Below, in pieces: positions 10,800 to 62,414 of a stretch of 64,000 bases of DNA. Made by a program: the position numbers and the translations under genes. This stretch comes from Ranitomeya imitator (lineage: Eukaryota), in the NCBI RefSeq assembly GCF_032444005.1, contig NC_091282.1, forward strand, positions 305,164,001 through 305,228,000. The letters run 5' to 3'. Position 1 is the first letter of the stretch, and every line of letters starts with the position of its first letter. The notes beneath the pieces are model-generated. The model ran no database searches. It saw nothing but the letters and a program-made list of their open reading frames with translations, and had not been told where the DNA came from.

Positions 10800-11620
10800 C
10801 CCCCACCACCAGGTAATACGGTCACATGTCGTACCCGCCGTAACCCCAGCAGCGTGGCCCTGCAGGTTACTGGGTGTGCACAGGCCCCTACACACAGGAC
10901 TTCTGCGCCACCGTCCTCCTCCATAGAAGGCGATGGATAATCCGTACGGTTACAGGTGTGGGAGGGAAGGGGCGCGACACTGGGACTCCAGGGCTCAAGC
11001 AGCCAACATTTACCTACAGACAGCTGCCACTAAACGACCCTGGGGGCTGTGCTGGGACTTGTAGTTCTACAGAGGGAGAGAGGCTGGCACAGCCCCAGGG
11101 TCTGACTGTACACTGGTGAGGGAAACAACGGCTCCTACTAAGCCGATTAGCGCAGGCTCTCGGCATTCCCAGCCATGGCCGTGCCACTGTGACCCCATAT
11201 GGAGGCGAGGGCACGGTGCCCACTACCAGGAGGCCATGGGCACGGTGCACACCACTAAATCTCACTTTGTTTGCAGACATATGTCGGACAAGGAAGTCTC
11301 TCAGCGCTCACCTCCAATAAGCCGAGGTCCACCATCACCAAGCGTCAGCTGTAGGCCGGCCCTTGTACGTCACTGCCGGCTCACCGAGGCCTGCGAGAGA
11401 CTACAGCGACCGAGATGCTGTGCGGCCACGGCACGTGATGCAAGATGGCGGCGCCCAGGAGCTCCTCGCAGGAGGCGGATTCAGACAGCAGTGCTGAGGA
11501 CCTGGAGCGGTTCCGTGAGGCGGCCTGGGAACCTCCCGGTGAGAGGCCGCTGTATATAGTCCGTGCTGCTCCGCAGCCTACAGACTGTGTAAACTGCAGA
11601 GTCGTGCAAACCTGGAGATC
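10800..11620. promoter_or_regulatory. CpG-rich bidirectional promoter of RNF185 and CUSTOS with a ZNF143/THAP11-type motif (11053-11065), E-box (11432-11437) and YY1-type AAGATGGCGGC at the CUSTOS start
   Basis: GC/CpG-rich island between divergent genes; - strand ACTACAAGTCCCA matches ACTAYRNNNCCCR; CACGTG present. TSSs not directly visible. Confidence 0.7.
11445..11538 (+). CDS. C12orf43: CUSTOS exon 1
   Basis: caagATGGCG start, ends CCTCCCG|gtgaga; 94 nt. Confidence 0.93.
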
Positions 11621-14600
11621 ACTGGGCAGAGACATGTTGGTGATAGGAAAAATGGAAACAACGTTTTCAGAACGTCTCTACTATAGAGTATGTGCACAAG
11701 TACCCAACCTTACATGCTCTGCTGCTATTAATGGTTGTCCGAGGAATGTTCTGCCGCTCTGATGCAGTCAGGCACACAAATCATCAAAATCCACTGCTGG
11801 CAGCTCCCCGTGCAATTGTAGACCAACATCGTCCCAAACGTTGTTACCGTTGTTACCGTTGCAATTGTTACCATCCACCTCTCGTGTCTCCCCTTTTCCC
11901 CATAGTTTGTAAGCTTGCGAGCAGGGCCCTCACTCCTCCTGGTATCTGTTTTGAACTGTATTTCTGTTATGCTGTAATGTCTATTGTCTGTACAAGTCCC
12001 CTCTATAATTTGTAAAGCGCTGCGGAATATGTTGGCGCTATATAAATAAAATTATTATTATTATTATTATTAAACGTTCTCAATAAGAGACAATGTGATC
12101 CTGGAACACAAACTAGAGGGGTGCACTGACCATACATTACACCACCCCATACAGTACTCACAAGAGTATGACCGGTGTGATGTTACCTGTCAGTGGCGCT
12201 GTCCACGTGGCCTCCAGGCAAATCTCCAGCTATCATTGCTGCACTCGCCACAGAAGTAGAAATGCCACCTTTTCCGCCATCTTGCTCTGCAGCATGCTAG
12301 CCTTTGAGAATGGCAGCGTGAAGTGAATGGAACACCTGTAGCTGGACTTGTAGCCCCCAGTGTCACACAAATACCGTCTGATTGTTTGTGTAGATATTTG
12401 ATGCCTTGGTATGTGTCACCTAATTTCACGTGCTGTACAGAATAGATCACTAAGCGCCACTCTTCATAAGTGCCACTCTTCGTATCTTTCAAGACCACAT
12501 GGGCGACACCATGAAGAGGCCTTCACGATGGAGCGTCACACCGGTCCTGCTCCCGGGATTATGGTGGGGCATGAGGTACTGTAGCTGCTCACCTCTAGTC
12601 TCCGTTCCAGGTGCATTAACAGTTTGACATTACATTGATTTGGTCATGGAACCAGTGGTACGGCATTTCTCTAAAGTGTCCCAGAAGCTGTTTTTTCTCC
12701 ATGATAGTGCCCGGCCACAAGTTACTCATGTTACTGTGAGCAGCATGTGTGACCCATACGTGCTGCCATGACCTACAGAGGCTCTGGATTTGTCTTCTAT
12801 CAAGCACCTCTGGGACATCATTGTCAAAAATTAGAAAGGGAGCTGCCAGCAGCAGATCTTGGTGATTTGCATGCCCAAGTGCATTCGGCGTGGCAAAACA
12901 CTCCATAGACAACCATTAATTAACCCCCATTGATGGTATGCCAAGGCGTGTAAGTGCAGGTATTTCTACTTGGTACCAAACAAATCGAGGTATTTTGAAC
13001 ATTTTGTTTCCATTTTGTCATAATTTACATTTCATTAAGATTGATCCTGTTTTTTTCCATAATTTTTTCCTTCATGGTGTTGCAATTTAAATGTTAACCC
13101 CTTCCTGCCAAAGGAAATCGTACTACATCTCTGTTGAAGAATCCTCTGAGTCAGCTCCTTGCGCTGCTAAATTCAATAGCGGGCATCTGTGTCTAAGGGT
13201 ATGTGCAAATGGTTAGTAAACTTATGCAGCATATACGGTAACCCGCAGCAGCCAGATGTTCTATCATATGGGATGGGATTTCCACAGATGCCTGCGGCTC
13301 ACCCATAGAGACTGAGATATAGCGCGTCTCTCCAACATGTTCATTTCTCTTGCAAGAGAAATGTCACCTATACAATGTATTGGACGCCGTGATTCCACTC
13401 GGTTCAGTGAACACATGCGGATTTACCTGCGTTCAATAGACCGCAGCGCTTTGGACGCAGTGAACATGCACTGCGTCCAAAGTGCTGCCACTTCCAGATC
13501 ATCTGCTCATATCCTTACAACCGTGGTCAAAGCTAAGCTCCCACAGCTGCCGTTAACCATTTAGTTCCTGCGACATAATTTCTGGGGATCCATAGGTTAC
13601 TGTGGCAGCTGGGGATCTGCTAAAGGATGGAAAATCGCAGCATGCTCCGATTGTACGCGAATATCGTCCAAAACTCACCAATGCAAGCCTATGGGTGCGA
13701 GAAAAGGTTCGCACAGCACTCGGCACATGTGAGTGCTGTCTGATTTTTACGCACTGGTGTCCAATTCTGGCGCTTAACACAAACCTCATGATCAACTACA
13801 AAAAAGTCTGACTGCTGTGCTTGCCAACAAGGGTTTTGCCACCAAGTATTAAGTCTTGTATGTCAGAGGGATCAAATATAGTGATGAGCGAGTGTACAAA
13901 TCTCCAGGTTTGTGTTTTTAGACTTGTGTTCCCCATGAGCATCTGTTCTTTTTTGATTGTGCTATCCCCTAGTTATTAGAAATAGGAGTGAATTGACAGC
14001 TGGATGTTGCCAGTTGGGGATGTGTCGTTACACAAAGACACACACCACTGACAAGTAATGCTAGTGCTAGTTCTAGGAGGAATAACTGAGGAATAGCACA
14101 GCTCAGAGGTCTAAGAATAGAGGATGCATTCAGTGTCTACAAGTCAGAAAATGAAAAGGTGTTGATTGGCCCCCAAATGTGAATAATTTTAAAAAGTTTG
14201 TGATCACCACAGAGCTAAAGAGGTCGTCCACTACTTTATCATTGATGACCTATCTGTAGGATACGTCATCAATGTCTGATTGGTCACGGTCTGACTGCTC
14301 CGCCAATCATCTGACCTCTGTCAGCGGCGGCCGCCTTCCGGAAATACTTAAATGAGGAGCTGCTCCGGCTTTTGATAGTGGCTGCGACAGGGCAATGTGC
14401 AGTACCCAGTCTCAGCCATTATCCCATGACGGAGCAGCTCTGCAGTTAGAGCATTTGCTGTCGCGGACACAGAAAAACTGATCAGCGGGGCTATCGGGTG
14501 TGGGACCCCAACCAATCAGACATTGATGACCTATCCTAAGGATAGGTCATCAATGATAAAGTAGTGGTCAACCTCTTTAATTCCTTGGTGATCATTCACT

Positions 14601-17600
14601 TCTTATTCATTTGTTTTTAATTTTATTAAGACAGTCTACAAAATTATGCAGATTTTGGGGCCAATCAACACCTTTTCCTTTTCTGACTTGTAGACAATTT
14701 AAAATGCATTCAGTAGCCAACAGTAGATCTTTAGAAAAGGATAGGTCATCAGTGATCAAGTGGTGGACAAGCTGTTTAATAAAGTGTACTACAGCTAGCA
14801 TTGCTTATAGAAAAGAATGTTTCTAACTTAGGACAGCAGATGGCGCATCATAGAGTAGCACGTGTAGGTATATAGGGCTGCAGATTCCTCCCACGTCCTA
14901 CAGCGGTCTGCATGAGGCCTAAACCTAACTGTATTGTCATGTACTGTATGTCTTTTTTCATGTTCATTGGAAAACGGGCACCGTAAACCAATAAAAAAGC
15001 ACCTGTTGCCCTACGGCAAAGGTGGTGGATGTTTGGTATCACAAAAAAATAGTGATGCCATTATTTTTGCAATGTTTTCAGAAAAAAATGCTTTTTCTTA
15101 TAAAAGCTATCCTTCACTCTAGGACAAGAATTAAAGGAAAAAAGCATTTATGTAAAAACAAAAGGACTACTATAGTACATATATACACATTCATTGCACT
15201 CCTGGGCATATACTGCATATTTATCATCTTACAGGTCCAGTGAAGAAAACAGTACTGCATCCAGAAAATTCTGCGTTTCTTGTTGTTCCAAGCTTACGGT
15301 ATGTATATTTAAAGTTGTTGTCCACTACTCAGACATCCCTATCTCAGTCAGCAGGTTTACATGAGTAAAACACTCCCCTCTGGTGCCGGTACTCGCTCTC
15401 CCAGGGCTCGTGTGAGATTATGTCACGTGAGCCCTGAGCCCAATCAGCGCTGGTGTCACTCTCCCCATCAGTAATCAAGATGAAGTGAGCTGCGACTCGC
15501 CACTCGCGTCCTCTTGATGTTTGATACATCTGAAGGTGGGGAGAGTGACACCAGCGCTGATTGGGCTCAGGGCTCACGTGACATAATCTCACACGAGCCC
15601 TGGGAGAGGTGAGTGTTTTACTCATGCAAACCTGCTGACTGAGATGGGGTTGTCTGAGTAGTGGACAGCCCTTTTAATGATCATGACCAGATTCTGTATC
15701 TTTTGCTGAAGCCATCTGAACACTTTGTTGTTTTGTAGGGGTCGACCCAACAGCCACGAACATGATGGGAATGAACTACAGACTACCCCTGAATTCCGCT
15801 CACATGTCGCCAAGAAGCTTGCAGCCATGCTGGACAGGTAATCGGAGGATCTTTGTACATGAGTACTGGGTAATTTCTGCTTTATTACTGTTATAGATAA
15901 CTGACTTGTGTTATTCAGCTGCATCAAAGAAATTCCTGGAAATAACAGCGTCAATCAGGAGTTTACAGCCACATCAGACTCTGAAGACGAAGGTAAATAA
16001 CCAGATGACACAGATCTTGATACAGGTTACACATTCTTAAAGGGAACCTTCCACTTTATTCATCCTGCCTAAATCAGAGAAATTCCAGCTATTTTACCCC
16101 CTAAGCTGGGGTTGATTTTATAGTGGTTGTCTATTTTCTGTCATGTCAAATTAAGTTGCTTTCAGGGAATAAGCTCATGTCCCCCCTTTTTTGAATGTAG
16201 AAATCCACATCTGCAGGTAGTAGCTATGGATATTAGATGTGCCGTGTTTCTTTGGCCAGATCACATTTTACAGAAGGTGTCGGCCATTCTGAACTGTGTG
16301 CAGGATGCTGGAGTGCCTATATGCTGCATTTCAGTTCACAGGTGGTGTGATAACTCCAGTCCAATGCACCATTCATAGATGTGGGAGTAATCTCACATCA
16401 TGAGCTGTAAGCTGCCCGGAGATGGGTCTGAGACAGCATCAGAATACACTGTACCGCTAAGACCATGTGTGAGTCAGCCTTGACAGACACAGCAATGACC
16501 CAAGACATTATTACTAGTTACTCGGACCTGTCAGTTCAGATGATATTGCCGTAAAAAAGTTAAATGTTTTTCACGTTTTAATATAAATAAAAGGGATCTT
16601 GTCCGCTTCCCTACACCTGGCAAGCAGCCACCATAACTTTAAATCAGCCTGTCCTCTGATTTTATTATCTTACTCACGTATATAGCGCTATTAATTTCCA
16701 CAGCACTTTACAGACGTCATCATCGATGTCCCAATTAGAGCTCACAATCTAGATTCCCTATCGGTTTGTCTTTGGAGTGTGGGAGGAAACTAGAGAACCT
16801 GAAGGAAACCCACACAAACACGGGGAGAACATACAAACTCCTTGCAGATGTTGTCCTTGGTGGGAATTGAGCCCAGGACTCCAGCGCTGCAAAGAAACAA
16901 CTCTAACCATTGAGCCACCATGCTGCCCATGGATTACAGCAGTCATTTATGTGCCTTATAAAAGTTACTATTTTCTTGTGAATTGAGATACTGATTTGGC
17001 TCTTTTCTTATTATTGCAAGACTCGTTAAAGGGTTGATTGTGACTTGTAGGATCGCTACTTCCAACAGGTGGCGCTATAGAGTTCACGTCCTCTTTTTCT
17101 CTGAAGAGGCAATTAGCATATTGTTTTTTAAATTAAGTTTTACGCTTTGTGTTATGCAAATTAGGCAGGGCTTGTTTCCCCAAACTGATCTGGCCTCAGG
17201 TCATATAGTCGCTCTAGGCGTGTCAGCATCCACCAAACAGGCAATATAATCATTGGGTCTTTGCAAACCTTGGCCATCCAGCAATGTTCTGCATGTTTAG
17301 GCATGTATAATGACACCGGGTATACATCCAGGAAGGCGTTAATGGCTCCTCCGTGTCTGCTTGCAAAGGAAAGGGCAGCATAAAAGCCTCCTTGGACTTA
17401 CACCGCTGATGAAGCCAGAGAACGCACACTCAGTTTTATTATGCATGCCCTGGAAGGTAGAATATCATGAATTTGCCTAGACCCTATGATGACAACATTT
17501 GTGTGCTGGCTATCGATCACGCCCAGGAGGGCTTTAATCCAAGAACAGACTAGTCTGGAGGAATTAATTTCCTGCCGGTCAAGAAAAAGAAACCATTATA

Positions 17601-20600
17601 TGACACATAAATAACTTTATTCTAATTGGATTATTTAACTTTATGGTGGTGGGTTTTGGAGAATAGGGCACCTTGTATGTCTCTTTTACATGGTCCTTTT
17701 TACTGTACAATCTTCCAGTCCAGCTAGGGTCTGCCTTAGCTCCAAGTGTCTTCATGATCTAAACTTTATCTCTACCCAGCTAGTCTTACTGACAAACTGC
17801 AGGTTGCACTAAGCAGAGTGAGAGTTAACTGCAACACGGCATCGTTTTATTATTTTTTTTAAAGGGAACCTGTCAACCCGAAAATCGCGGGTGAGGTAAG
17901 CCCACCGGCATCAGGGGCTTATCTGCAGCATTCTGTAATGCTGTAGATAAGCCCCCGATGTTACCTGAAAGAGGAGAAAAAGACGTTATATTATACTCAC
18001 CCAGGGGCGGTCCCGCTGCTGGTCAGGTCGGATGGGCGTCTCTGGTCTGCTGCGGCGCCTCCTATCTTCATTACAAGACGTCCTCTTCTGATCTTCAGCC
18101 ACGGCTCCGGCGCAGGCGTACTTTGCTCTGCCCTCTTGAGGGCAGACAAATTACTGCAGTGCGCAGGCGCCGGAAAGGTCAGAGGCCCGGCACCTGCGCA
18201 CTGCAGTACTTTGTCTGCCCTCAACAGGGCAGAGCAAAGTACGCCTGCGCAGGAGCCGTGGCTGAAGATCAGAAGAGGACGTCTTGTAATGAAGATGGGA
18301 GGCGCCGCAGCGGACCAGAGACGCCCATCCGACCGGACCAGCAGCGGGACCGCCCCTGGATGAGTATAATATAACGTCTTTTTCTCCTCTTTCAGGTAAC
18401 ATCGGGGGCTTATCTACAGCATTACAGAATGCTGTAGATAAGCCCCTGATGCCGGTGGGCTTACCTCACCCGCGATTTTCAGGGTGACAGGTTCCCTTTA
18501 AATTGACATACAGATTTTTTTCTTCACAAAGTATCCGAAAAATGCAGAATGCTATCTAAAGGCTTCTGAGATGTCGTCCTGTGAGCCTGCAGACACCCAG
18601 TTGTATACCTTCTTGTTCAGGCTCAGTGGTTAGCACAGCAGCCTTGCAGTGCTGGAGTCCTGGGTTCAAATCCCACCAAGGACAACATCTGCAAGGAGTT
18701 TGTATGTTCTCTCCATGTTTGCGTGGGTTTCCTCCGGGTTCTCCGGTTTCCTCCCATATTCCAAAGACATACTGATAGGGAATTTAGATTGTGAGCCCCA
18801 ACGGGGACAGCAATGATAATGTGTGCAAACAGTAAAGCGCTGCGGAATATGTTAGCGCTATATAAAAATAAAGATTATTATTATGTACCCATCTATTATC
18901 AATAATCCCATCCATCACTGATGGTAGAGGAGTGTAATATATAGGTAATGAGATGCGTGTAGTGTGCTGCACACGGGGTTGAACTATGAAGCTCTGCATT
19001 TCCAAGGATTAATTTCCTTTGCTCCTCACCTCCACGTGTACTGTCGCCCCAGTTTTCACCAGGGACCACTGTCCAGCTTTGGTTGAAGCCCTGCGCTTCT
19101 AGTGGGGACGTTTTCTAAGGGCAGTGGACTCTAGTGACAAACAACATGCAGAGTAAAGACAGTGACAAAGACAAATAAATAGGGATCATACATATGACCC
19201 AGACATCTGACTGGAACTGCTCAAATACATAAGAGATAAACATATGTGAACATTATTACATATACACAATCTGGGGGCGTCTTAAATACTGCTCTGGAAT
19301 ATTTATGTATTATTTTGTCTGGGGACTAATGGAGGGACATATATAGGTGTCCCTGCTTTCTTTGGCACATTTGGTCTGGGCCGCGTTATATATATTCTGC
19401 TATATGGCAGCATCTAAGCGTGTTGTTTCCTTTCAGTATATGCAGGGATATTATTGCCTCTGCATCTGCGCAGTCTTGCCCTGCTTGTTGGGCAATTTGA
19501 TCATGCGCACTAAATCTATCAGACCTTTGAGGAGGAGACACCGTAATGAGCTGTTACACTTCCTGGATAATTATATCCCTATTAGTGGAACGCAACTTGC
19601 GGTGCACCACCGCTGTTGGCACCTGCGCAGTAAAGCTAGTCTCCAGGACATGCGCACTCGCTCCATTTGAATGTGGCTCCGGACGTGCACCGGAAATAGT
19701 TTGTGCACTTCCGGGCTAATCGCACTTATACCTGAAGCGCGCTCCCAGCTCCACTACTTCCGGACCGCGTGCAGCGTCTGTACTTCTCGCTGCCCACGCC
19801 TATCATTGGCATCCCCTGATGAGCCCCGCAGGATCTCCTCCGGGGTGAAACGCGTCGGGATGAGACATTGTCTCTTAAGATAAGTGTATCGCTTATGTAC
19901 ACAGATGCTGTTATGCTGGCGGTCTATTATGATTTTTTTCACCTGTTTTTTGCTGCATTACATTAATCATGCAGCATCATTGTGTCATTCCCCCTGATTA
20001 TACATATTAATGTTTTGGGGGTTTGCCTGCATTGATAGTGATGCGATTGGCACAGGTGTTTTGTGACAGCCTCTGGTGATGCTTGTGCATATGCGATGAT
20101 CCTAATAACATCTTTTTGGCAGTGACGCTATGTATGGATCAGTTCACTGAGGGCTCTGTTCTGGCAATGATGCCAATATCCGTTGATACTTACAGATCAT
20201 CATATCTCTGGCGATGATGCCCTCACATATATCTGAATAGACTGACTTTTTTCTGGCGTTGATATCACTGTATATTATATTTGGATCATGATACGCTTTG
20301 GCGACGATGCCCTCGCATATGCTATGACTCTGTTTTATTTTTTCTGGTGGTGATGCCATCAAGCTTTGATCAGCTTACTATTTATGCTCTATTTTTGAGA
20401 CATGATGCACTTATAAATATTCATATAATGGAATAAACTGATTATTTGTCTAGCGCCGATGCCAGTGTGCACCAAAAAGGGACTGAACATTGTCCATCAT
20501 TTACGTTCAGATGTTTGAATGAATTTATCTTTTTCTGGCGCTGATGCCACTGTGCACTATAAGGGATTGACCTAAATATCATTAATAGCCATGTCCCTAT

Positions 20601-23600
20601 ATATATATTTTGTCTGGCATCGACACCATAAGATGTATCAAGACTCTTCTGTTTACTAATAGGTGACTACTTGAGAATTTTTTCTTATACTCCACCTGTA
20701 TCTACCTCTGAGAAGAGTAAAGTGTGTTATCAAACATTGTTTATACCTTATCTTTGTAAATCACTTTATCTTCTAGTGATTCACATTAGTAAGAGTCTTG
20801 GTAACCTCTTAGGGTACCGTCACACAGTGGCATTTTGATCGCTACGACGGCACGATTCGTGACGTTCCAGCGATATATCCGTGACGTTCCAGCGATCTCG
20901 CAGTGTCTGACACGCTCCTGCGATCAGGGACCCCGCTGAGAATCGTACGTCGTAGCAGATCGTTTGAAACTTTCTTTCGTCGTCTAGTGTCCCGCTGTGG
21001 CGGCATGATCGCATGGTGTAACAAAGGTGTGCACGATATTGTATACGATGTGCGCATAGTAACCAACGGCTTCTACATCGCACATACGTCATGAAATTAT
21101 CGCTCCAGCGTCGTACATTGCAAAGTGTGACAGCAGTCTACGACGCTGGAGCGATATTGTTACGACGCTGGAGTGTCACGAATCGTGCCGTCGTAGCGAT
21201 CAAAATGCCACTGTGTGACGGTACCCTTAGAGTTTATTATAATAAGCTCACCATCACTATCAGCAGTCAGTACTAGCGACAGCATTTTAGTGTACATATA
21301 CACTTTTTTCTGTTTTTTTTGTGGTGTTTGTTTGGGTGGTGGCTTGTGGTAGGGATACCTACTAGGGTTATCAGGGTCAGTCGACGTTGAGCGGGGGCGC
21401 CATTTCGTATCCCAGGGTGCCAACCTCCGCGGCAAGGAAGGATACAGCTTAGGGTGAGGCACCACTATCATCCCTAATCCTTTCCTTATTATCATATATA
21501 TTTTTTCTTGCTCTATTATTTTTTATGAGCTTATCCTGACCCTAGGATCCCTACTTTTTGTCTATAGGTTATAAGTGGTTCTTTATTTATATTTTATTTT
21601 TATTTATTTATAATAAAAATATATTTTTTAGGTCTTTTTTGTATTTTTTGTTTTTTTCTAGCTGAATAGACCTTGGTCATTTGTTTTGGGTGTTGTTCAA
21701 ATACATAAGAGGGCTGCGCAAGTGTGCCATCAATTACTTTTTTTTTTTTTTTACTTGTTATACTTTTATGTTTAAGGTTTTCGTCTGTTAACTACATCTG
21801 TTCCTGGAGATTCTGGGAAAATATTACCTTCTCCAACTTTAAAGCGCAGAGTGGCATCTTCTACCAGGTATACTATGGGTTGGAAATTGTATTTATTGCA
21901 TTAGCATGCAGACTGCACTTCAGAAGCAGCTACATGGCAGCATTACATTAGGCTAGCTTCACACTAGCGTTCGGCAGGGCTGCGGATGGCGGCCTTCGTC
22001 CTCCATTAAGCCCCGCCCACTGCCGTGCCTCTTCCTTCAGCTCCGCCTATGTCTGCATGCGTCCTGCGTACCCTATCTTCAACATCATTTTGACGCTACG
22101 CTGACCGCAACAAAATGAAACATGTTGCGTTCGACTCAGCGCAGTGTCAAAACGACGCATGCGGAGACATCAACATACATCCACATGGCCTGCATACTCA
22201 ATGTTAAAGATAGAGGACGCATGCAGCTGTAGGCGGAGCTGAAGGAAGAGGTGCCGCAGTGGGCGGGGCTTAACAGGAAGAAGGCTATCATCCGCAGCCC
22301 TGCTGAAAGCAAGTCTGAAACCAGCCTTAGAAGAAGACTTTACGCTTTTAACAATCTCTCTCCAAGTACAGACTATAGAGTTAATATGTGGCAGCCTGTA
22401 TTCAGCTTGCGCTCAGATTGCTATGAAACTGTTTAGTTCCTGTATGAATTGGGGCAATTAATGCTCCTCTTATATTAGCCATGTTATACTTTAATAACAT
22501 GTTCATGATTGAACTAATCCTTCTAAAAGCTAAATGCTTGCACATATCTATATTAAGGATATAGCAGTATGTGGTGTTTAACCTGTTCTTGCTCCCTTAC
22601 ATTTTTGAAGAAAATGAGTAAAACTAGTCCGGTGTTGGTTGTCACGACCAGTAAAGGCTGTTTCCTAAAATAGGACATCAAAGGATCTTTAACACCCCTT
22701 CATGACATGTGACAGAATGGTAGGTGTTGTGTTAGCTCATACACAATGATGCTGGCAGATAATGGCTGTGTTACACAGTCAGGATCTGCACCTAACAGCA
22801 TTGCTGTTAACTACATAAATGCTGCTGTCAGTCTCTGACTGTAGCATCTTAAAGCGCACGGAGCATAGGGTGCGGCATTCCATGATATCCATGAGAGCAG
22901 GGGGTCCGCTGAAGACTCCTGTGTCTTTCAGAACAGTGGTCCTTTGGCTGGGCCTTACAGAAGACTGTGATTTTTGCCATATACTTCAATGCTGTAGTAA
23001 TTGCAGTATAAACCATTCAATAATCGCAAGTTCAAATCTTGTAAGGAGACTACCAAATAAAGTAAAAAAAAAAAAAAAATGTTTGCATATGTGTATAATA
23101 TATACCTAATAAAAAAATAATATATCTGCGCTGGATATAATTCCCTTTTTGTTTATATAAAGCAGTGTTCAGGAGAGAAGTCTCTATTATTACGGTTATC
23201 GGCTAATTCTAATTAGTGTCTAATTAAGCCTTTGGCTTTTTGGTCCACTGCGCTTTCCATAGCCAGTCACGTGTGCGGAACACGTGACTGGGGCGTCACG
23301 CTAGGTCCTGCACTGTCAGGAGACCGAGCGGCTAATATCTACAGCGCGCATTCACCCCACGCTACTGACTGTAAGTGACGGCTGTGGTTGTGCACTGCCA
23401 CCTGCCGGGGCAACGCTCACCACCCGTTCAAGCTCCAAACAGACTCATTTGGACATGCAGATGTGAGGATCATAACTACAGGCACAAAGGAGTGGAGGAA
23501 CAAATCGGACGACAGGAGGTAACGTCCTCTCCAGTAAATACCTCAAAGACTTTAACTGACAATATATTTATATATTGGATCATTTATGGGCTTTTATATA

Positions 23601-26600
23601 TTTTTATACAATTTTATATATTTTTATACATACTCTGCTGAGAGGGCTGATGTGCCTATATAACACTATATACGTTTATTTCTCCTTCGCCTCATTGGGG
23701 GACACAGACCGTGGGTGTTTGCTGCTGCCACCAGGAGGCTGACACTAAGTAATACAAAGAAAGTGATCTCCTCCCCTGCAGTATACACCCTCCTGCTGGC
23801 CCCCAGCTAACCAGTTCTTGCTTAGTGTCCCTAGGAAGCACACGGACGGGTCTGCTATTCAGACCCAAAGAACTCTTTTTACTTTAACCTTATACAACGG
23901 ACGAAGGGAGCGACGGATTCTTTCATGTTCCGATCTCTCCCGAACCAACAACAGGCGAGCACGGGAGTTTCATCTCTCCGTATCCTCTCCTGCGACGTGG
24001 GAAGCCACTGCTTGAGCTGATTTTAGGGGCGACGGGCCCCTTCTAGGGCACCGATCTCCCTCCTCCCTTATCAGACGAGCACTGGAGTTTCACCTTCAGT
24101 ATCCTCTTCTGCAGCCAGGCCTATTGCCGGACATTCAGCCCTGCCCACCAGGTTTTACCCTCGGCTGTACAGAGGCACCTTCCAGCGTGGCGTCCGAGCA
24201 GCCCCCACTGCATCACCACTGAAAAAGCGGATGATGGAAGGAGGCAGACGGTTCCTCTCCACCTCCCTGCTAAAGGAACGATGGATTGAGGACTTTTCTT
24301 ATCCCTGCACCGTCCAAACAGCAGCAACAGCACAGGATCTTTTCTCTACCTCTGACCTGCTGAACAAAGCTGCATACTGGGGTAAGTGCTGGGACTCGAG
24401 CGGTTGGAGGGCTCTGCGCATCTGGCGGTTTATTCCCTCGTTCGGCGCCAGCTGGCTTAAAAAATTTAGCCCACGGCTTCGGGTTTGTGTAGGCCGCAAC
24501 CCGGAACTCTTCAGGCTCCGCCCCCCTATTCAGGCGCCTCTCATTCAGGATGAGAGCTCTATTCTCGGCGGCCATCTTCTTCCTCCTGCCATTTCCGGAC
24601 ACGAGCTCATCCGGAAGTGGCTGCTGCATCGCATCGGCGGTACTCAGCGCTGAACTCAGCGCTATTCCAGACGGGGGACTCAGAATCTCGGTAAGGAGAA
24701 TCCTCCCTCCGCACCCCTTCCCCGCACGCACCCCGGCAGCATAAAGGGACTAGCGTTCCCTCTTTTTTAATACTTAACACCTGCAATCTCTCCAGCAGCC
24801 TCTGGTCTTAAAGGCACAGGTCTTAAGGGTACATGACCGCATTCCCTGGCCTTAAAGACACATGCCCCTTATAGGTACATGTCCAGCTTTCCATGGCTTT
24901 AACACATGACCAGCATCCCTGGTCTTAAAGGTTCCCTAGTTTTTATAAAGGGGCACATTACCAGCATTCTCTGCTCTTTAAGTCATGACCAGCCAGGAGC
25001 CGGTCACCTTCCACAGAGTACTTAGTTCAAATGAGCTCAGGAGCCCTCCGCCGCCGCCGATCCCGGCTCTTCCCAGAGTACCTGGTTCCCCTCAGGGGCT
25101 TCACCTCTGGCATAATCTTTGAAAAATGCCCCGGTCTTAAAGGCACATGACCAGTATTCCTGGTCTTAAAGGCACGTGACCAGTATTCCTGGTCTTAAAG
25201 GTACGTGACCTGTATTCCCTGGTCTTAAAGGCGCATGACCAGTATTCCTTAGTCTTAAGGGCACATGTCCAGTATTACCTGGTCTTAAAGGCACATGACC
25301 AGTATGTCCTGGTCTTAAAGGCACATGACCAGTATGCCCTGGTTTTACGGGCACATGACCAGTATGCCCTGGTCTTAAAGGAACATGACCAGTATGCCCT
25401 GGTTTTACGGGCACATGACCAGTATGCCCTGGTCTTAAAGGCACATGACCAGTATGCCCTGGTTTTACGGGCACATGACCAGTATGCCCTGGTCTTAAAG
25501 GAACATGACCAGTATGCCCTGGTCTTAAAGGCACATGGCCAGTATGCCCTGGACTTAAAGGCACATGACCAGTATGCCCTGGTCTTAAAGGCATGTGACC
25601 AATATTCCCTGGTCTTAAGGGCACATGACCAGTATGCCCTGGTCGTAAAAGCACATGACCAGTATGCCCTGGTTTTATAGGATCATGACCAGTATGCCCT
25701 GGTCTTAAAGGCACGTGACCAATATCCCCTGGTCTTAAGGGCACATGACCAGTATGCCCTGGTCGTAAAAGCATATGACCAGTATGGCCTGGTCTTAAAG
25801 GCACATAACCAGTATGCCCTGGTTTTAAAGGCACATGACCAGTATGTCCTCGATTTAAAGGTACATGACAAGTATGTCCTGGTTCTTAAAGGCACATGAC
25901 CAGTAGGCCCTGGTTCTTAAAGGCACATGACCAGTATTCCCTGGTCTTAAAGGCACACGACCAGTATTCCCTAGTCTTAAAGGCGCATGACCAGTATTTA
26001 CTGGTCTCAAGAGAACATCATCAATCCGAGGCTGGTCACCCTAACTGAGCTCTGGAGCCTTCCGCCGCTCATCCCCTAACCACAACCCATGGTTTCTCTG
26101 ACAAGATATGGAATCCCTCTGTGAACCCTCTGTGGCTCGGAGTGCTCGCAGGACCGATATACATGGTCCCTCTCCTACATGGGAGCCGTCGGCTAGCAGG
26201 GGCCGCAAGTGTTCTATGAAATCGTACAGGCGTCTAGAAAACGGAAGTTTTCACTTCCTGATCTCTCCCCTATGATTTGTTGAGTACAACGCTGAATATG
26301 GATCGCATATTGCCTTGGATTGCCAGAGCTTCAGCAAAAGAGGGACTCTCCTATTTATACCATCAACAAATTGACGAGTGATTCACTGGACAGAAGCCTC
26401 TAAGTAGGTTGCCATACCTGGTCTGTTTTTTATGGGCGACGGGTCCTTTAAAAGGCACCGTTTCCCCCCCCCCCCACATCTTCAACACACGAACACATGC
26501 AGTGTCGCCTCCATGTATCCTCTTCTGCATCCAGGCCTAACGCCAGACAGCCTGCCCTGTCCACCCGGGGCCCTCAACTCTGGGGATGTACAGAGGCACT

Positions 26601-29600: not shown

Positions 29601-31557
29601 CGATAACCGTAATAATAGAGACTTCTCTCCTGAACACTGCTTTATATAAACAAAAAGGGAATTATATCCAGCGCAGATATATTATTATTTTTTTATTATT
29701 TCTAGTATGACACGGGTAAGTGGTGCGTTGTGAATATCTGCTTACAGGAAACTAGTTGAGCAAGTGCCACTGGTATTGAAATACCAATTCTCTATAATAT
29801 ATACATACCTTTTTTTTTTTTTTTTACAGAAATCTAAAAAATGACCCTGAAGTTCAAATCCCTAACTTTTTTTTCCCCAATTAAAAATAAAAGTTGTGTT
29901 GCTGTTTCACTAAGTCAGATCTATCAAAATATAAAATTAAACGGCATAAGAAAAAAATTCAAACCGCCAGAATAGGTTTTTTTTTTTTTGTATTTGCAGA
30001 AAATGAAAAAATGCAACAACAAGCAGTTAAAATGTCGTATCTGCCCCAAAACGGTATTTTAAAAAAACGCCACAAAGCTCACCACTTAAATAAAAAATTT
30101 GTACATACTTGGTATCTCTGTAATCAAACTGAGCTGGCAAGTCATGTCCACAAGTTATTTTTTTTTTTTAATCAAAGTATGAATACGGTTATTTTGTATC
30201 ATTTGAAATATCACTGCATTTGAATTTTTGTTTTTTTTTCTGTAAAACGAATAGTGCCATTCAAAACTACAACTTCTCCCACAAAAAAAAAAAACACCAA
30301 ACCTCATAGATCTGTATAGACAGATAAATACTGAGCTCCATCACTCGAGACAAATCTTACCGTTTTCGTGCAGACGACGATCATCCAACTTGCGTGCCTT
30401 TCCTAGGACATCGTCAGTGTCACATACCAGTTATTACAAATAGTTTGTGACAAGTCTTATTTTATTTATTGTTCGGTTTGTTAGATTATATAAAGTGCAG
30501 CTTACATTGTGTAACGCTATATAAATATTAATGTATATACATCGTATCATCTTCCACACTGATTTATCTATTCCGGAGGTCTGGATTGAGGTCTTTTTAG
30601 AGGGGGATTACATGGCAGCGATGAAATGATTCTTGCTGTTTTAGCTAGATTTTGTATACTCCACATTGCTTCTAGGAGAGTCTTACTGTAGGACAGGGAA
30701 AGCTATTCCCTGCACTGTCCAATGGTGGAGGAAGAAAAGTAGCAATCTCTCGAGTATTTTAGTTCCTTTAGTGCCTGAGGGCGTCTCACGCTGCAGTAAA
30801 GATTCACCACGTTTCATGTAATGAATCTTCGACCTGTATACCGTTTCGAAAGGATTGTTCAGCCACAGCTTGACTGAAAAAATGCTCATTGTAATATCAC
30901 GATTATCCAACCATTTTGAAATTTGTTTTTAAAGTAAGTTCACCAGCCTCAACAGGTCTAAGAGATCTGTTAATTAATGGAAGCAGTTTGTATAGTGAGA
31001 TCTTGTACCAGATCCTCTTTAAATGTAGTATTTCACATAACTGTTCTTCAGGGTTGTTATTTTTTTTCATCCACTCGTTGTCTACTAAATAATTGCAATT
31101 TTTCACAAAATTCTTTTCCTTTTCATCTCTGCCTGGCAGTGAGGACAGTGAAGAGGAGAAACAGAGAAGATGTCGGGAAGCTGCTGTGTCGGGTTTTGAT
31201 ATTCTGAGAAGCAGTGCATTGCAGACAATCCCAGTGGAGATCGTCGATACAGCCAACAATAACCAAAAGAAGAAGAAGAAGAAAAAGACGAAAAGAGGAC
31301 TGACTGATGAGGCTGATGACCAAAGCATGGAGTCCAAAGGTAAGATAAATGTGTTTAAAAAGAAGAAAAAGAGAGAAAGAAGAACAAGTGACGAGACTCA
31401 TTCCAAAGAGCAGATTGAAATGCAGTCTAAAAAGAATAAAAGTGGATCAGACCATAATAATACCGTGGACGCTGTAGTGGATGGATCTAAGAAGAAAAAG
31501 AAGGAAATAGGATTGAATAAAGATGCTGCATCTGAGCAGAATGTCAATCCGTACTAA
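11445..31557 (+). CDS. C12orf43: Protein CUSTOS (C12orf43 homolog), complete CDS: join(11445..11538,15235..15298,15739..15837,15919..15992,21777..21867,31140..31557), 840 nt, 279 aa
   Basis: Motifs MAAP...[68 protein letters not shown] and a Lys-rich tail match recalled CUSTOS; all junctions GT-AG and in phase; adjacent to HNF1A as in human. Confidence 0.93.
11760..12071 (+). mobile_element. 3' end of an L2/CR1-clade LINE
   Basis: Ends GTAAAGCGCTGCGGAATATGTTGGCGCTATATAAATAAA(ATT)n, the SINE tail but with a non-SINE body; 5' limit approximate. Confidence 0.65.
12110..13092 (+). mobile_element. Fossil Tc1 transposase fragment
   Basis: [11 protein letters not shown] at 12534 and degenerate [16 protein letters not shown] near 12770; many stops. 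Confidence 0.75.
13775..13880 (+). mobile_element. Tc1 transposase C-terminal fragment
   Basis: [14 protein letters not shown] resembles the end of the 39809 transposase. Confidence 0.7.
14219..14576. mobile_element. T2/Kolobok-type MITE
   Basis: AGAGGTCGTCCACTACTT / AAGTAGTGGTCAACCTCT, (C/T)TAA flanks. Confidence 0.85.
15235..15298 (+). CDS. C12orf43: CUSTOS exon 2 ([22 protein letters not shown])
   Basis: cttacag| ... |gtatgt, 64 nt, phases fit both neighbours, ends in conserved PSLR. Confidence 0.85.
15313..15673. mobile_element. T2/Kolobok-type MITE filling most of CUSTOS intron 2
   Basis: TTAA flanks, GTCCACTACTCAGACA TIR core, palindromic body. Confidence 0.85.
15739..15837 (+). CDS. 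C12orf43: CUSTOS exon 3 ([32 protein letters not shown])
   Basis: tttgtag| ... |gtaatc, 99 nt, the most conserved block. Confidence 0.95.
15919..15992 (+). CDS. C12orf43: CUSTOS exon 4
   Basis: ttcag| ... |gtaaat, 74 nt, in phase. Confidence 0.9.
16660..16928 (-). mobile_element. V-SINE-like element
   Basis: tRNA-like head, V-domain-like core and tail as in 18620-18884. Confidence 0.88.
17863..18497. mobile_element. T2/Kolobok-type MITE, near-perfect 635-bp palindrome
   Basis: TTAA TSD; same family as 6375-6915. Confidence 0.92.
18620..18884 (+). mobile_element. V-SINE-like element
   Basis: A-box-like GCTCAGTGG, B box GGTTCAAATCC (18663-73), V-domain-like core, (ATT)n tail. Confidence 0.9.
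19620..20650 (+). mobile_element. Probable Penelope-like/retrozyme non-coding remnant carrying the hammerhead
   Basis: Inferred from the hammerhead type, an upstream CpG/CCGGAA-rich segment and downstream degenerate repeats; no RT or GIY-YIG ORF recognised; boundaries approximate. Confidence 0.45.
19810..19862 (+). ncRNA. Minimal type I hammerhead ribozyme (Penelope/retrozyme type)
   Basis: CATCCC-CTGATGA-GCCCCG(12-nt loop)CGGGGT-GAAA-CGCG-TC-GGGATG: intact core CUGAUGA/GAAA/GUC, 6-bp stem I, 6-bp stem II, helix III reduced to the palindrome ACGCGU. Confidence 0.85.
20812..21226. mobile_element. PIF/Harbinger-type MITE
   Basis: Long TIR GGGTACCGTCACACAGTGGCATTTTGATCG..., TTA TSD. Confidence 0.92.
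21777..21867 (+). CDS. C12orf43: CUSTOS exon 5 ([30 protein letters not shown])
   Basis: tttaag| ... |gtatac, 91 nt. Confidence 0.92.
21951..22326. mobile_element. PIF/Harbinger-type MITE, diverged
   Basis: GGCTAGCTTCACAC.../...GAAACCAGCC, TTA TSD, palindromic body. Confidence 0.8.
23679..29492 (+). mobile_element. DIRS1-type tyrosine-recombinase retrotransposon, degenerate ORFs
   Basis: Inverted termini 23679-23817 / 29319-29492; internal complementary region ~29103-29200 matching the outer ends of both ITRs; RT (PYLVDF), RNase H ([15 protein letters not shown]; [16 protein letters not shown]) and YR remnants broken by many indels. Confidence 0.93.
24820..26010 (+). repeat. 30-bp minisatellite (GCACATGACCAGTATGCCCTGGTCTTAAAG)n in the DIRS gag region
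   Basis: Exact 30-bp period over 25260-25860, degenerate at both edges with some 29/31-bp units; source of ORF 25166..25834. Confidence 0.95.
31140..31557 (+). CDS. C12orf43: CUSTOS last exon, Lys-rich C-terminus
   Basis: ggcag| acceptor, frame of ORF 31093..31557, several poly-K NLS-like runs, TAA stop. Confidence 0.94.

Positions 31558-31888: not shown

Positions 31889-62414
<30,526 letters not shown>

Follow-up and report, generated by a model that had tools for sequence, protein, structure and literature searches.

A type I hammerhead motif within a repeated insertion in intron 4 of CUSTOS in Ranitomeya imitator, probably an inert passenger

A stretch of 64,000 nucleotides from the frog Ranitomeya imitator (contig NC_091282.1, positions 305,164,001 to 305,228,000; hereafter the window) contains coding exons of the gene CUSTOS and, within its intron 4, a sequence with all the core positions of a type I hammerhead ribozyme. 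The motif lies in a block of 2,461 bp that is bracketed by a perfect target-site duplication (TSD) and has no counterpart in the orthologous intron of Phyllobates terribilis. We describe the gene, the motif and the block in turn, and conclude that the motif was probably brought in by a retroelement-type insertion and is now an essentially inert passenger.

The CUSTOS gene and the hammerhead motif in intron 4

The open reading frame (ORF) at 31093-31554 on the plus strand matches the Pfam family CUSTOS (PF23999) and corresponds to the last exon of the gene (E = 3.6e-11; 43.5 bits, cutoff 27.4). In the database, the protein CUSTOS of P. terribilis (P0001) is closest to it. The exons were mapped one by one by tblastn of P0001 against the window rather than as a joined spliced model, and the splice sites were read separately. 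The six coding exons found by tblastn are 85-97% identical to those of P. terribilis, as befits another dendrobatid. Two runs of N, at 39339-39467 and 41085-41212, were masked in the window. The arrangement of the gene is as follows.

11445-11540, plus strand: CUSTOS coding exon (tblastn with P0001)
15234-15299, plus strand: CUSTOS coding exon (tblastn with P0001)
~15739-15837, plus strand: CUSTOS coding exon (tblastn with P0001)
15919-15992, plus strand: CUSTOS exon 4 (tblastn with P0001 and splice site read)
15993-21776, plus strand: CUSTOS intron 4 (GT...AG), a coding intron and the host of the insertion (splice sites read)
21777-21867, plus strand: CUSTOS exon 5 (tblastn with P0001 and splice site read)
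31138 onward, plus strand: CUSTOS last exon (tblastn with P0001 and Pfam PF23999)

At the CUSTOS locus of P. terribilis (L045), CUSTOS on the plus strand and HNF1A on the minus strand are convergent, tail to tail.

The hammerhead motif lies 3.86 kb into intron 4 and has the same orientation as the gene. An earlier note on this DNA had placed it in sense in CUSTOS intron 4, and the Pfam match, the tblastn exon map and the splice sites all bear this out. The parts of the motif are listed below. All were read from the sequence, and the motif as a whole was also found by a descriptor scan.

19810-19862, plus strand: type I hammerhead motif
19810-19815, plus strand: 5' strand of helix I, CATCCC
19816-19822, plus strand: hammerhead core, CTGATGA (CUGAUGA in RNA)
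19823-19828 and 19841-19846, plus strand: strands of helix II, GCCCCG and CGGGGT
19829-19840, plus strand: extension of helix II, AGG/CCT around an ATCT loop (12 nt)
19847-19850, plus strand: GAAA box
19850-19855, plus strand: palindrome of helix III, ACGCGT (ACGCGU), with CGCG at 19851-19854
19855-19856, plus strand: TC, with C17 being C19856
19857-19862, plus strand: 3' strand of helix I, GGGATG

Every core position of a type I hammerhead is present, namely C3-U4-G5-A6-N7-G8-A9, G12-A13-A14, A15.1-U16.1 and H17. There are 6 bp in helix I and 6+3 bp in helix II, whose basal pair, 10.1-11.1, is a G.U wobble where G-C is usual. Helix III consists of the lone A15.1-U16.1 pair and a palindromic CGCG tetraloop, so that a helix of 6 bp can form solely in a dimer. 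The scissile bond is predicted between 19856 and 19857.

The frequency of such motifs was assessed with a descriptor of our own that demands the core, at least 5 bp in helix I, at least 4 bp in helix II and a helix III loop of 0-12 nt. On both strands of the window it gave 1 match, and still 1 when the helices were relaxed to at least 3 bp. In 300 dinucleotide-matched random sequences scanned with helix I at 5 bp or more and helix II at 4 bp or more, the expectation was 0.0067 matches per 64 kb. Since the motif is the sole match of the descriptor against this expectation, it is real and a chance match in the window is implausible. A second or decayed copy was not found by the descriptor on either strand of the window. 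Blastn with the 53-mer or with a 311-nt module around it recovered no decayed copies in the CUSTOS region (11-32 kb, both strands), and in a local alignment search for decayed hammerhead copies no score rose above the null given by shuffled sequences. The earlier note had read the core, stem I, stem II and the ACGCGU helix III, predicted cleavage after C19856 and counted a single copy in the window. Each part of this anatomy was found again where it had been read, the predicted cleavage site agrees with it, and the count was upheld by the descriptor scan, by blastn and by the alignments against shuffles.

The Infernal scan against Rfam, which had been proposed as a check, turned out differently. 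At the gathering thresholds no hammerhead was called in the whole window. When a permissive local scan was run, the best match was Hammerhead_3 with 15.1 bits (cutoff 48.5, E = 2.9), aligned in circularly permuted form. This alignment, which implies a hammerhead in type III register that would cleave after 19778, was rejected because helix I cannot form in that register. The Rfam families HH9 and HH10 gave no match to the motif.

The insertion and its repeat family

The origin of the motif was studied by comparing the intron with that of a single outgroup. Positions 15900-21900 of the window were aligned by blastn to the P. terribilis CUSTOS locus L045. Intron blocks aligned at 15905-16076, 17590-17860, 18497-18619 and 18880-19235 and then directly at 21694-21900, and the last two correspond to the mutually overlapping segments 14360-14747 and 14730-14930 of L045. 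Both sides of window 19236-21696 thus align, whereas the sequence between them has no alignment to the orthologous P. terribilis intron. The junctions were then aligned, which gave the following features, none of them assigned to a strand.

19221-19235: left TSD, 15 bp, TCAAATACATAAGAG (junction alignment)
19236-21696: insertion carrying the hammerhead, 2,461 bp, non-coding (blastn against L045 and junction alignment)
21697-21711: right TSD, 15 bp, identical to the left copy at 15/15 positions (junction alignment)

TCAAATACATAAGAG occurs once in P. terribilis (L045 ~14733-14747) and twice here, bracketing 19236-21696. The hammerhead lies about 575 nt inside the insertion, which measures 2,043 bp when a nested miniature inverted-repeat transposable element (MITE) and its duplicated TTA are subtracted. 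Because the P. terribilis intron is without 19236-21696 and the 15-bp TSD is perfect, we conclude that the hammerhead arrived with the insertion. The motif is accordingly not a conserved feature of the host gene, since it came with an insertion that the P. terribilis orthologue does not have. In a second, related species, represented by the contigs of run X10, the block is present as well and is about 93-96% identical. As the block is present in this species and missing in Phyllobates, the insertion took place after the split from Phyllobates and before the split from the second species.

Contigs of four public runs, none on record as RNA, were aligned to 18500-21500. One of these, X2, is a DNA run. 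Its summed contig depth was about 13 on the single-copy flank at 18904-19206, 58-297 across the insertion and 156-192 around the hammerhead, and separate X2 contigs covered 19450-19803, 19826-20223 and 20432-20778 at 81-86% identity. From the difference in depth between insertion and flank and from these diverged contigs it follows that the block belongs to a repeat family that is low in copy number and fairly diverged, and that the repeated unit includes the hammerhead as an integral part. Besides the nested MITE and a minisatellite, 19236-21696 contains no direct or inverted repeats. Terminal inverted repeats of the insertion were not found, TRF gave nothing above threshold and no Rfam family was matched within it. 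Four features were recognised inside the insertion, of which three are listed here.

19560-19870, plus strand: GC- and CpG-rich block ending with the hammerhead, GC 0.57, CpG observed/expected 0.98 (composition)
20075-20650, plus strand: degenerate minisatellite with a period of about 45 bp, its units starting ctggcg.tgatgcc (motif listing; covered by paralogous contigs)
20812-21226, no strand assigned: nested MITE of 415 bp with long terminal inverted repeats (inverted repeats, contig depth and joints)

The GC-rich block has repeated TGCGCA and ACTTCCGG motifs, and contig depth is slightly higher at 19712-19913. The two motifs, which we take to be NRF1- and ETS-like, serve as a lead only. The block may be a promoter-like module of the element. 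The minisatellite units were considered as decayed hammerhead monomers and rejected, as they have a period of 45 bp and contain neither GAAA nor the helix pattern.

The nested MITE is flanked by a TTA duplication at 20809-20811 and 21227-21229, which suggests an element of the PIF/Harbinger type. It is highly abundant, with a contig depth of about 8e5 in X2. Some contigs of the runs X1, X2 and X10, and hence of the second species as well, join 20809 to 21228 and skip 418 bases, so that they are without the MITE. Because contigs of three runs show this joint, the MITE is a later insertion than the original block, either recent or, as is probable, polymorphic. A further segment at about 21300-21510 is of high copy number, with a depth of up to 1.9e4 and an A-rich tract at its minus-strand end. 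It may be a separately nested short interspersed nuclear element (SINE) on the minus strand, and it gave no tRNA or Rfam match.

Two more lineage-specific insertions were seen in intron 4. A fold-back element occupies 17858-18502, with arms of 316 nt that are 97% complementary and lie 13 nt apart. It is missing at the orthologous position in P. terribilis, where L045 14228 joins 14232. The SINE-like repeat at 18620-18884 reaches a summed contig depth of about 1e6 or above in the DNA run X2, and this copy is also missing at the orthologous P. terribilis site. An inverted partner, 84% complementary, is located in the same intron 1.7 kb upstream, at 16707-16916. Intron 4 measures about 5.8 kb here and about 1.2 kb in P. 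terribilis, a difference that is almost entirely due to four or five mobile-element insertions. Outside the intron, 25166-25895 is a long tandem array whose period is about 30 bp, and its minus strand reads as an open frame of 222 aa made up of a repeated motif of 10 residues.

Folding, dimerisation and the readings of the motif

The best fold of the isolated 53-mer, at -23.7 kcal/mol, pairs GAUG of the core with CGUC, and the ribozyme-competent fold is less stable at -22.5 kcal/mol. When 253 nt of context were folded, the upstream UCAUUGG paired with the CUGAUGA core and formed a hairpin that hides it. In the DNA, TCATTGG lies directly upstream of helix I (region 19803-19822) and is fully complementary to CTGATGA, two of the pairs being G.U. 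This complementarity could be due to chance or could be a built-in attenuator.

The intermolecular ACGCGU duplex was calculated at -7.5 kcal/mol, which corresponds to a dissociation constant (Kd) of about 5 µM. These values describe the isolated duplex, as helix III between two molecules crosses helix I in the active dimer fold. By our estimate, a rare pre-mRNA in the nucleus is present at a concentration many orders of magnitude lower than this Kd. Amphibian type I hammerheads whose helix III likewise consists of one pair and a palindromic tetraloop are reported to be weak as monomers and efficient only as dimers (PMC7229834), and when a single copy of one Penelope-type minimal motif was assayed, no cleavage was detectable in vitro (PMC4209133). 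The description of the motif in the earlier note as a minimal form with a palindromic helix III, typical of Penelope-like elements and retrozymes and favoured as a dimer, matches these two reports.

Taken together, our results suggest with a probability of roughly 0.78 that the motif is a sequence of hammerhead lineage, that it came with a non-coding retroelement-type insertion after the Phyllobates split, and that it is now an essentially inert passenger. A genuine hammerhead-lineage sequence would have been carried into CUSTOS intron 4 inside an insertion of about 2 kb that is flanked by a TSD of 15 bp, after the lineage of this frog had separated from that of Phyllobates. A non-coding, repeated block that is flanked by a TSD of 15 bp speaks for target-primed reverse transcription, and by analogy to other hammerhead-bearing frog repeats the element would most plausibly have been mobilised by Penelope-like machinery. 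The ribozyme is presumed inactive, because with one pair in helix III an active fold would depend on a second motif, which the pre-mRNA does not contain.

The intact state of the motif would reflect the youth of the insertion rather than selection by the host. The two copies of the TSD are still identical, and we estimate that about 35 constrained positions stay unchanged with a chance of about 0.4-0.16 when divergence since the insertion is 2.5-5% per lineage. For these two reasons, intactness needs no selection.

Several points weigh against this interpretation. With a single outgroup, the same alignment would formally be explained if P. terribilis had lost the block by an exact deletion between two repeats of 15 bp. 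The ten longest ORFs of the insertion gave no significant Pfam match, and this includes any remnant of a reverse transcriptase (RT) or GIY-YIG domain. The insertion also contains no tandem units, no direct repeats resembling pseudo-long terminal repeats (pLTRs) and no poly(A) tail. The motif retains five CpGs along with its complete core. Finally, a contig of X3 that is 96.4% identical and spans the motif has none of its 36 listed differences within 19793-19903. We do not read this gap as conservation, since five further differences of this contig are unlisted and a comparable difference-free gap of 100 nt occurs elsewhere in it.

A different reading takes the copy to be catalytically competent and to serve the element family rather than the host, the RNA of the element being processed for retrotransposition. 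In its favour, neither the core nor the two long helices are damaged, the block belongs to a repeated family and a promoter-like CpG-rich block lies directly upstream. Transcripts of this copy and of the perhaps 5-20 paralogous ones would have to dimerise via ACGCGU, or a protein cofactor would have to stabilise helix III, and CUSTOS pre-mRNA would be cleaved occasionally as a side effect. Dimer-dependent cleavage by amphibian hammerheads is documented and in vivo cofactors have been suggested (PMC4209133, PMC7229834). However, a low copy number and paralogues that have diverged by 14-19% speak against current activity of the family. Rare transcripts would plausibly reach nuclear levels far below the Kd of the palindrome duplex, about 5 µM, the core is sequestered by competing folds and a tandem arrangement is lacking. 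We therefore regard service to the family as unlikely.

It is quite improbable, too, that the insert represents an undescribed class, a non-tandem non-autonomous retroelement with a single ribozyme directly downstream of a CpG-rich, promoter-like block with NRF1 and ETS motifs. In such an element the ribozyme would trim the element transcript, and copies lying in sense in introns would occasionally sever the host pre-mRNA.

That the motif is a chance match without descent from any ribozyme is hardly credible either. The Rfam covariance models stay below threshold, the z-score of the fold is only -1.4, and in a multi-gigabase genome with many windows scanned rare chance matches are expected somewhere. 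Against this stand the expectation of 0.0067 per window, which was obtained at looser helix lengths than those seen, the three extra helix pairs and palindromic tetraloop, which by our own estimate lower it by about 100-fold or more, and the position of the motif inside a repeated, TSD-flanked insertion.

Least probable of all is an exaptation by the host in which the CUSTOS pre-mRNA would be cut by regulated self-cleavage within intron 4 and the output of the gene tuned in this way: every pre-mRNA should carry the motif, given its sense orientation in a constitutive intron, and intronic ribozymes with proposed regulatory roles such as the CPEB3 ribozyme exist (PMC10919898), but the motif is lineage-specific and missing from the P. 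terribilis orthologue, whose CUSTOS gene is intact, it has no dimer partner in cis, its weak helix III and the G.U pair 10.1-11.1 face competing folds, and intronic sense copies are common in this class of repeats. In Xenopus, about 43% of the retrozyme-homologous copies are intronic and they are, if anything, depleted from introns (bioRxiv 10.64898/2026.07.22.740005), which points to counter-selection, if to any selection. The earlier note had raised the possibility of a conditional intron-cutting switch. Apart from the sense orientation there is nothing in favour of such a switch, and it is left unsupported by the lineage-specific insertion, the lack of a partner hammerhead, the weak helix of a trans-dimer and the folds that hide the core.

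As it stands, the finding is of little weight, as dispersed, dimer-dependent type I hammerheads in non-coding retroelements have already been documented by the thousands in frog genomes, many of them in introns. The locus is a clean example, with an orthologous site that is empty, a TSD of 15 bp without mismatch and nested insertions that are dated, of an intronic ribozyme motif that is intact in sequence and can be explained without a function for the host. Should the CUSTOS pre-mRNA be cleaved, it would offer a natural and recently acquired case of the effect of an intronic ribozyme on splicing.

Comparison with known hammerhead systems

Metagenome and viral contigs contained no relatives of the motif when searched with its specific pattern. 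A looser pattern gave 44 metagenome contigs (L001-L044), many of them moss-associated, with AT-rich hammerhead-like motifs that have CCCUGAUGAG, a helix II of GUGUU/AACAC and a common GAAACGCGUCGG segment. These were rejected as relatives of the frog motif, as they form a distinct AT-rich family and share with it merely ACGCGUC, or the palindromic ACGCGU helix III.

The amniote hammerheads HH9 and HH10 and the hepatitis delta virus-like ribozyme of CPEB3 (PMC10919898) resemble the motif in lying in sense in an intron of a protein-coding gene. They are conserved at orthologous positions in many species, whereas the motif described here is lineage-specific and missing in a genus of the same family. 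The HH9, HH10 and CPEB3 ribozymes fold stably as monomers. The motif in CUSTOS differs from them in having no stable helix III.

The minimal hammerheads of Penelope-like elements (Cervera & De la Peña 2014, PMC4209133) share with the motif a long helix II of 6 bp and a vestigial palindromic helix III. They have a predicted action as dimers with very low activity in vitro, as might be expected here by analogy, and are dispersed in thousands of copies across frog genomes. Penelope-like elements are distinguished by an ORF with RT and GIY-YIG domains, by pLTRs and by a tandem or inverted arrangement, none of which is present at the insertion; neither the ORF nor a remnant of it was found, and neither pLTRs nor a partial tandem or inverted arrangement. 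Their hammerhead lies in the terminal repeat, while here it is about 575 nt inside an element with no recognisable terminal repeat.

The amphibian satellite-2 or non-LTR (long terminal repeat) retrozyme hammerheads, such as HHR_Amex1 of the axolotl (PMC7229834), are likewise of type I with a helix I of 6 bp. Their helix III is also a single A-U pair with a palindromic tetraloop, and by analogy a low activity of the monomer and a higher activity of the dimer would be expected here. The host element is non-coding in both cases, and the TSD, 15 bp here, exceeds the 4 bp seen in plant retrozymes. Differences were seen in the organisation of the element, since amphibian retrozymes are tandem monomers of about 170-400 bp that each contain a hammerhead and the motif here is single in a unit of about 2 kb. 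Their helix II has 4 bp with conserved contacts between loops 1 and 2, compared with 6+3 bp here, and retrozymes are described as having less than 45-50% GC, compared with 0.57 in the GC-rich module of this low-copy family. Of the features that mark metazoan non-LTR retrozymes, a non-coding sequence and a TSD longer than 4 bp were thus found and tandem monomers were not.

The assignment to Penelope-like elements or retrozymes in the earlier note therefore stands for the architecture of helix III and falls for membership, as tandem units, pLTRs and a remnant of an RT or endonuclease are missing. In conclusion, the carrier fails the tested defining features of both classes, and the motif itself resembles the ribozymes of retrozymes and Penelope-like elements.

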